Assembly: GCF_006345805.1 (NCBI RefSeq)
Contig: NC_043015.1
Coordinates: 49,166,001 to 49,230,000 of the forward strand
DNA: 64,000 bases
Direction: 5' to 3'
DNA from: Octopus sinensis
Taxonomy: Eukaryota
Below the pieces are notes generated by a model. The model was not told the origin of the DNA. It saw only the letters and a program-made list of their open reading frames with translations, and ran no database searches. Below, in pieces: positions 38,465-38,749 of this stretch (the first letter of the stretch is position 1; every line of letters begins with the position of its first letter). A program made the position numbers and the translations under genes.

Positions 38465-38749
38465 CTACCGGGCGTCCACCAGGTGGGGGTGACTTCTTTC
38501 ATCGTCTCCATTCTTGCCATCTTTGCCCCGCTCGTTCTCAAAGATGGCATCAAGTGCGCCAATGTGCGACCGTACAAGCGCATATGAGCGCACGAATTCC
38601 TGTCTCTTTCGCTCCATCTGAGCCGCTGTCCTCTTGTAGCCTCTGCTCTTCAGCGCAGCCGCAATCACCTCGCTAGGGCTATCTCCGCCGGCGCACTCCC
38701 ATGCTCGTACGAATAAATCCAGCTCGTCACGTCTCCATGCTCTGGACAT
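38465..38749 (-). CDS. LINE ORF1 N-terminus with Myb/SANT-like (trihelix) domain
   Basis: WRRDELDLFVRAW...IAAALKSRGYKRTAAQMERKRQEFVRSY fits the W..E..L...W / IA..L...GY.RT..Q...K.....Y trihelix pattern. Confidence 0.65.
   Translation of the reverse strand: MSRAWRRDELDLFVRAWECAGGDSPSEVIAAALKSRGYKRTAAQMERKRQEFVRSYALVRSHIGALDAIFENERGKDGKNGDDERSHPHLVDAR

Follow-up and report, generated by a model that had tools for sequence, protein, structure and literature searches.

A decayed copy of a long interspersed nuclear element (LINE) lies at ~34874-38780 of the window, the 64,000-nucleotide stretch of Octopus sinensis DNA analyzed here, and its first open reading frame (ORF1) probably opens with a Myb/SANT-like domain. 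The element belongs to a two-ORF Octopus family of the apurinic/apyrimidinic endonuclease (APE) type, in which an APE is combined with a reverse transcriptase (RT). The best explanation of the data as a whole, which we favor with moderate confidence, is that a 94-residue ORF at 38465-38749 on the minus strand represents the decayed front end of ORF1, carrying a Myb/SANT-like domain with a DNA-contacting role. As an ORF1 architecture, the combination of a Myb-like domain with a CCCH zinc finger is new and adds to the modularity already known for LINE ORF1s.

Reading frame and relatives of the 94-residue ORF

The ORF list, three-frame translation and database relatives identify the ORF at 38465-38749 as the cut-off N-terminus of a LINE ORF1. 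It starts with an ATG, its sequence begins MSRAWRRDELDLFVRAW and it ends with a TAG; an in-frame stop is located 10 codons 5' of the ATG. The terminating TAG (38465-38467, minus strand) is premature, as the frame of the window copy remains open for 52 further in-phase codons and the relatives read through this position. The CCCH finger of the window copy is split by a frameshift near 38190-38196, and further frame breaks are present in the endonuclease (EN) and RT regions. With its premature stop and frameshifts, this copy of the LINE is dead, and the 94 residues are not a complete ORF1, the real ORF1 being composed of the domain, a linker, the CCCH finger, a helix and a tail. A preliminary description of this DNA had placed the ORF between a 5' array and the CCCH/EN region in continuous GC-rich sequence; this placement holds on the minus strand, with a GC fraction of 0.45-0.57 over the coding block (~34950-38780) that falls to 0.17-0.30 in the array.

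Relatives were sought by an exhaustive phmmer (HMMER) search of 1.84 billion representative proteins at E <= 1e-3, which was needed because a word-indexed protein search with the 94-residue ORF came up empty (with the family alignment, it returned only three short Logan proteins). The phmmer search yielded 21 relatives, the best at E = 5.5e-19, and by this measure of sequence similarity the ORF exceeds chance. All named relatives are "uncharacterized" or "hypothetical" proteins of O. sinensis or O. vulgaris, and the remainder come from Logan/ENA assemblies. In most of them the start codon lies 3-4 residues ahead of the first Trp. In P0032, P0030 and P0047 the domain is followed by a CCCH finger and then by the motif YADAVR...AAAEQ, which the window also holds, just 5' of its endonuclease.

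Searches with tblastn recovered the N-terminal domain, CCCH finger, EN and RT in this order, and at the spacing seen in the window, in one O. sinensis locus (L004) and two O. vulgaris loci (L006 and L007), and this collinearity indicates that the domain is a feature of the family. Less complete arrangements were found in L002 (N-terminal domain followed by CCCH), L005 (N-terminal domain followed by RT, with an internal deletion) and L010 (N-terminal domain, CCCH and the start of EN). At least six independent copies, drawn from diverged subfamilies, have the domain in the same place; between these subfamilies its protein identity is 35-55% and its DNA is barely alignable (137 nucleotides at 68.6% for L004 versus L006); the linker 3' of the domain is not conserved among the relatives. 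All genomic copies examined are degraded, and one O. sinensis copy found through its endonuclease (L001) is 5'-truncated and silent on the N-terminal domain. It is very likely that the 94-residue ORF is part of the LINE's ORF1. The preliminary description had proposed that this segment begins a LINE ORF1, to be abandoned if other copies lacked it; the segment is in fact also present in L002, L004, L005, L006, L007, L008 and L010, and is collinear with the rest of the element in other loci.

Several annotated proteins overlap these sequences: XP_036366487.1 (L004 10001-11440) and the O. vulgaris CAI97xxxxx models (L002, L005, L006 and L007) are ORF1 fragments, and in some gene models of this kind the splicing extends over as much as 21 kb. 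A number of O. sinensis and O. vulgaris proteins annotated as "uncharacterized" or "hypothetical" are thus ORF1 fragments that should be masked as repeats.

Probable assignment of the domain to the Myb/SANT-like fold

Pfam, hhalign, AlphaFold2 and Foldseek together point to a Myb/SANT-like (trihelix-type) three-helix domain at residues 3-72 of the ORF (38534-38743, minus strand). The window ORF matches Myb_DNA-bind_4 (PF13837) over residues 3-61 (model positions 2-71 of 89, ~78% of the model; E = 0.00099, 19.9 bits). Seven of the 21 members match Myb_DNA-bind_4 at E <= 1 (best 7e-4), and no other Pfam family recurs among them. Myb_DNA-bind_4 is also the best match of the family consensus (22.7 bits, E = 1.3e-4), with the canonical Myb_DNA-binding family second (E = 0.039).

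The only non-octopus relative among the phmmer matches, P0045 (a Logan protein of 1114 residues), contains at least five tandem repeats of the pattern W-x3-E-x3-L-x2-AW...R-x-x-x-x-x-K-R-x-x-L-x-x-x-Y, separated by acidic spacers, and as a whole passes the PF13837 threshold (32.2 bits). An hhalign comparison of the octopus family alignment (A1) with an alignment of the P0045 repeats (A2) gave a probability of 92.8% (score 40.6, E = 4e-7), while the reversed A2 scored 13.9 and 30 column-shuffled versions of A2 scored 14.2 or less.

Two AlphaFold2 models, for which the family alignment was headed by a different sequence each time, are three-helix bundles with a pLDDT (predicted local distance difference test) of 84.6 and 89.0 and with helices at residues 7-20, 25-35 and 42 onward. 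The predicted third helix is long (42-78) and extends beyond the compact Myb core. The best low-deviation Foldseek match in the Protein Data Bank (PDB) is the Myb domain of RAD (2cjj; probability 0.96, root-mean-square deviation 1.7-2.1 Å, TM score 0.75-0.76), and the Arabidopsis GT-1 trihelix domain (2jmw; probability 0.77) is second-best for model 2. These are followed by PHR1, c-Myb R2, TRF2, ZZZ3, RTBP1 and the SANT domain of SMRT (4a69), and RSC is also in the list.

Among the aromatic and core columns of the alignment, W5 (86%) and W17 (94%) flank helix 1, I29 and L33 lie in helix 2, and F52 and Y56 (95%) in helix 3. Conservation peaks in helix 3 (mean column identity 0.66), where Y56 is near-invariant. 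Positions R40, R47, K48, K/R49, R54 and R60 hold a basic residue in 71-100% of the members, in most of which the domain has a positive net charge. The profile and model evidence makes a Myb/SANT-like fold of trihelix flavor the probable identity of the domain, at a level below formal Pfam membership. The Myb/SANT-trihelix domain of the preliminary description therefore stands as the best available assignment, with a sub-threshold Myb_DNA-bind_4 match and a predicted bundle nearest to RAD Myb and GT-1 as the outcome of the Pfam and structure-prediction checks proposed there.

Organization of ORF1 and its junction with ORF2

An intact ORF1 protein (ORF1p) would comprise ~260-370 residues. The Myb/SANT-like (trihelix-type) three-helix domain would come first, starting 3-4 residues past the initiator Met, and a charged linker that is not conserved would join it to a single CCCH zinc finger. 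The finger would be followed by a conserved helix (AAAEQQSFL-MAQ-IV-QLTWL) and by a P/Q-rich tail, overlapped in the -1 frame by the beginning of ORF2. An ENA contig (L008) contains an intact ORF1 of 371 residues with all motifs in one frame and its own stop, in the order N-terminal domain, helix 3, CCCH (C-x7-C-x8-C-x3-H), AAAEQ, IVGQLTWL and P/Q-rich tail, with a charged linker after the domain. Pfam searches of P0032, P0030, P0047, P0027 and P0028 detected no RRM, CCHC, coiled coil, esterase or PHD; they returned just weak CCCH and Myb_DNA-bind_4 matches.

Remnants of each of these parts are found on the minus strand of the window. The charged low-complexity linker (G/E/K/R-rich) is represented at 38300-38464 by the in-frame continuation of the 94-residue ORF, and comparable non-conserved linkers are present in P0027-P0032. 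The frameshift-split CCCH-type finger (CMFYLRGSCWHGKK / CRFAH) was located at 38167-38231 by three-frame translation and by tblastn to the CCCH region of P0032; the Pfam zf-CCCH match is weak, and the finger is intact (C-x7-C-x8-C-x3-H) in L007 and L008. The conserved C-terminal motif YADVVR...AAAEQQSFLCMAQKIVQQLTWL (37957-38075) is shared by the window, L001, L004, L006, L006b, L007 and L008. The frame table places the ORF1 tail stop (PRCSY*) at 37831-37859, where LLLNIRG, the first motif of the endonuclease, is read in another frame, so that ORF1 and ORF2 overlap.

In L008 the endonuclease ORF overlaps the end of ORF1 by 13 nucleotides in the -1 frame, and ORF1 thus has a frame separate from ORF2, as is characteristic of a LINE ORF1. 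In four of seven copies (L001, L004, L007 and L008), which belong to diverged subfamilies, EN lies in the -1 frame with respect to the LTWL frame of ORF1. Two points count against this two-ORF organization: the other three copies (the window, L006 and L006b) deviate from the -1 relation through extra indels, an indel having fused the frames of the window copy; and, all copies being degraded, the -1 overlap depends on frame majorities and a single intact ORF1 (L008). An alternative model with a single ORF encoding the domain, CCCH, EN and RT was rejected, though not with certainty, given that the L008 ORF1 has its own stop and that EN is in the -1 frame in four copies. Frame-by-frame comparison attributed the openness from the AAAEQ motif into EN in the window and L007 to copy-specific indels.

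The ORF1 stop falls inside the CTG-AAY of the endonuclease LLN motif, and its conservation is not independent evidence because it is fixed by ORF2 coding. No conserved AUG was found at the start of the EN frame among the copies compared, from which we infer that ORF2 may be made by frameshifting or reinitiation. L008, the only intact ORF1 found, contains within 75-1834 a duplication in the linker (TSKNGPTCSVE..GAANKGAGKA) and another at the start of ORF2 (LLN motifs at 1181 and 1316).

Predicted function and competing explanations

In the mechanism proposed here, ORF1p would act as the nucleic-acid-binding partner in the LINE ribonucleoprotein (RNP). The CCCH finger and the basic linker would hold the LINE RNA, while the Myb/SANT-like domain would contact double-stranded nucleic acid through its conserved basic helix 3 (R40, R47, K48, K/R49, R54 and R60), whose basic character and conservation fit a nucleic-acid-contacting recognition helix. 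The most likely ligand would be chromosomal or target DNA, the contact tethering the particle to chromatin, and this ligand would probably be common to the subfamilies because helix 3 is the segment most conserved across them. DNA binding is the predicted function of the domain, with a confidence that stops slightly short of even. The more specific proposal that the N-terminal domain of ORF1p is a sequence-reading DNA module, which steers the RNP to chromosomal sites or binds the element's own 5' region, is unlikely. The preliminary description had regarded the domain as captured; since no host donor gene was found among the phmmer matches in 1.84 billion representatives, this part of it is unsupported.

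The alternative that survives best accepts the Myb/SANT-like fold and dispenses with DNA binding, the domain serving instead as a protein-protein, oligomerization or RNA-binding module that replaces the coiled coil or RRM of other ORF1s. SANT-type domains can bind proteins instead of DNA, and such matches (SMRT 4a69 and RSC) are in the Foldseek list; the long third helix (42-78) also reaches past a compact Myb core. Moreover, ORF1 proteins of characterized LINEs are RNA chaperones (PMC12503042), and with RRM, CCHC and coiled coil not found in the octopus ORF1s, another part of the protein must supply these functions. Nevertheless, the nearest structural matches of the domain are DNA-binding Myb and trihelix domains, and nucleic-acid binding agrees with the positive net charge and with the conserved basic face that helix 3 presents, although these observations do not separate DNA from RNA. 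We therefore consider a Myb/SANT-like domain without DNA binding to be possible but rather unlikely.

A second alternative questions the fold itself, proposing a lineage-specific helical N-terminal domain whose Pfam and fold matches represent convergent three-helix similarity. The evidence that weighs against a Myb/SANT-like assignment is collected here. None of the 21 members, nor the consensus, reaches the Pfam gathering score of PF13837 (27 bits). Single P0045 repeats are weak (PF13837 in two of five, best E = 0.033), and the link to P0045 is not fully independent because this protein was found with the window ORF as query. No Foldseek match in the PDB is significant (all E > 0.1; 0.4-1.2), as is usual for bundles of 60-70 residues; the three-helix bundle is a widespread fold, and the Foldseek lists also contain homeodomain and EF-hand proteins. 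Profile searches of PDB sequences with A1 and A2 gave nothing useful, and the classic Trp triad is incomplete (W5 and W17, with F52 and Y56 after them). However, convergence does not readily account for a single Pfam family, and no other, recurring in seven of 21 members with ~78% of the model covered, or for the hhalign probability of 92.8% with clean reversed and shuffled controls. Moreover, the helix-3 pattern R-T-x-x-Q-x-E-R-K-K-x-E-F-x-R-S-Y resembles the signature of Myb/SANT-like families, R-[ST]-x-x-Q-C-x-x-K-W-x-N-L-x-x-x-Y. A domain unrelated to Myb is accordingly judged improbable, and the Myb/SANT-like assignment is retained.

According to a third alternative, also raised in the preliminary description, the domain binds the 5' tandem array of its own element, in the way that the Harbinger Myb-like protein binds the subterminal repeats of its transposon, and controls the element's promoter. 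Tandem Repeats Finder (TRF) delimits an AT-rich tandem array of 64- and 86-bp units at 38808-39775 (minus strand), directly 5' of the ORF1 ATG, which is probably the 5' untranslated region of the window's LINE subfamily. Tandem or repetitive sequence directly 5' of the ORF1 ATG is found in several subfamilies (in L002 an AT-rich 27-bp unit repeated 13.7 times, in L004 a 152-bp unit repeated 1.9 times), and L005 and L006 share ~1-1.2 kb of CT-rich homology 5' of the ATG, which indicates that the upstream region of these two copies is the element's own. However, the arrays are unrelated between subfamilies (64/86-bp AT-rich, 27-bp AT-rich and CT-rich). The 64/86-bp array of the window has no blastn match in any other locus, and L009 and L010, whose N-terminal domains are closest to that of the window, do not have its AT-rich array upstream. 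The five 5' regions share only five 7-mers, against a mean of 2.1 and a maximum of 8 in shuffled sequences, so that nothing rises above chance. Co-evolution with arrays that change is at odds with the conservation of helix 3, which is the highest within the domain, and the membership of the window array in the element rests on one full-length copy of the window's subfamily. Binding of the domain to its own array is therefore disfavored and must be regarded as quite doubtful. The 86-bp units (window 38960-39150) contain GTGTGGGTAAAAA, which resembles the plant GT-1 box II GTGTGGTTAATATG; we take this to be a curiosity in AT-rich sequence and not evidence.

The weakest alternative, that the 94-residue ORF is a locus-specific insertion, a host exon or a chance ORF beside the LINE, could appeal to the O. 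sinensis and O. vulgaris annotations that list its relatives as separate "uncharacterized" or "hypothetical" proteins, but it is counted as refuted and has a negligible probability, as the gene models of these relatives lie directly 5' of CCCH, EN and RT sequence in the same orientation and the domain holds one position in at least six independent copies of diverged subfamilies.

Comparison with known systems

The N-terminal zinc finger(s) and Myb domain of R2 bind target DNA 5' of the nick and hold the target during target-primed reverse transcription (PMC12503042). Like R2, the octopus element has a non-LTR protein whose N-terminus pairs a zinc finger with a Myb-type three-helix domain. Unlike in R2, where these domains belong to the single RT polypeptide, the finger is of the C2H2 type, the endonuclease is restriction-like and insertion is strictly site-specific in rDNA, the octopus domain resides on a separate ORF1 together with a CCCH finger, next to an APE (Exo_endo_phos_2) and in dispersed genomic contexts. 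The Pfam affinity of the octopus domain is, moreover, with Myb_DNA-bind_4 and not with the canonical Myb. The logic of ORF1p may thus be analogous to that of the R2 zinc finger and Myb N-terminus, but placed on an accessory protein.

Canonical LINE ORF1s (types I-V of Khazina and Weichenrieder; CR1, L2 and Jockey of Metcalfe and Casane) resemble the octopus ORF1 in being located 5' of ORF2, in their modular composition with a nucleic-acid-binding zinc motif, and in their overlap with or close spacing to ORF2. The octopus ORF1 differs from these types in having no RRM, CCHC knuckle, coiled coil, esterase or PHD detected by Pfam. The plant GT-1/PF13837 group shares with the octopus domain the best Pfam family, the Foldseek match to GT-1 (2jmw) and three helices with an extended third; the differences are the sub-threshold scores, an identity of ~15%, the incomplete Trp triad and the context of a retrotransposon ORF1 versus a host transcription factor.

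A Myb/SANT/trihelix accessory protein, which also has domesticated relatives, is typical of PIF/Harbinger elements, in which the Myb-like protein binds the subterminal repeats of the transposon. The octopus ORF1p is similarly a transposon-encoded, non-catalytic Myb/SANT/trihelix-like protein beside a catalytic ORF. Unlike Harbinger, a DDE transposon with terminal inverted repeats, its partner ORF encodes APE and RT, and binding to its own ends is unsupported. TRAS1 and SART1, telomere-specific LINEs of the R1 clade, contain a Myb-like region in ORF2 between EN and RT with a proposed role in target recognition. They are likewise APE-type LINEs with a Myb-like segment, which in the octopus element heads ORF1 and not ORF2.

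Within the retrotransposition machinery, the ORF1 proteins of LINEs are understood least, and the modules described in them bind RNA or are lipase/PHD-like. If the octopus domain did act as a sequence-reading DNA module, an APE-type LINE would, to our knowledge for the first time, be seen to leave DNA recognition to its ORF1p. The presence of a Myb/SANT-like N-terminus together with a CCCH finger suggests that ORF1p can contact DNA or chromatin. Neither Myb, SANT nor CCCH is mentioned in the ORF1 surveys searched (Metcalfe and Casane 2014, with 448 elements; a 2016 L1 survey; and a 2026 study of the CR1 group), in agreement with the earlier remark that this domain is not a standard LINE ORF1 module. 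A literature search for Myb/SANT in LINE ORF1 returned only the N-terminal Myb of R2, and no paper joining "Myb SANT-like" and "non-LTR". LINEs are abundant in octopus genomes and have been reported as expressed in the octopus brain (PMC9115989).

Remainder of the element and neighboring repeats

The APE-type endonuclease domain of ORF2 (37151-37863, minus strand; Pfam Exo_endo_phos_2, E = 3.1e-9) is frameshifted, and the RT and C-terminal region (35296-36516, minus strand; Pfam RVT_1, E = 9.9e-24) contains several frame breaks; both were also detected by tblastn. The window element shares 96.2% nucleotide identity with a 5'-truncated O. vulgaris copy (L007, 13959-17120). The post-RT motif FDYCSQLWSP...YWERLKRLKLYSLERRR resembles that of chicken CR1, which we take as a resemblance only, making the CR1 group a candidate clade.

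Comparison of the 3' ends of six copies located the 3' end of the window element at 34852-34900 (minus strand), where a conserved ...GGCCACAGCTCATAAGCTGAAACTAGA is followed by (ATCA)5. The conserved end ...GGTGCCCCAGCATGGCCACAGC...GAAACTAGA, followed by (ATCA)5 or other short repeats, is found in all six copies, and the CR1-group trait of a conserved 3' end with a short microsatellite in place of poly(A) is thus present. Short dispersed repeats that correspond to the last ~100 nucleotides of the LINE (its conserved end GGTGCCCCAGCATGGCCACAGC...GAAACTAGA) are present both in the window and elsewhere in O. sinensis (window 34820-34920, 17409-17509, 3591-3744, 11274-11316 and 25493-25604; L001 9450-9547). 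These are probably short interspersed nuclear elements that share the 3' tail of the LINE.

Microsatellites of the (TA)n type abut the 3' ends of several copies (window 34050-34880 and 40219-40270; L007 7500-9215 and 16950-17370), and the L007 element is bordered immediately on its 5' side by 1.7 kb of (AT)n. Runs of (TA)n number 82 in the window (3.4% of its length, one per ~800 bp) and make up 3-5% of the loci and 27% of L007; because they are too frequent to be informative, no (TA)n target preference is claimed.

Two further LINE-derived segments are present in the window. A related LINE fragment at 25761-26604 has 67% nucleotide identity to the 3' part of the element and tblastn matches to the C-terminal region of RT. 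On the plus strand, ORFs of 224 and 73 residues at 43893-44789 resemble the C-terminal part of a different LINE and include a Cys-rich CSICRKGVGRNSIRCTRCKLWAHKRC motif.

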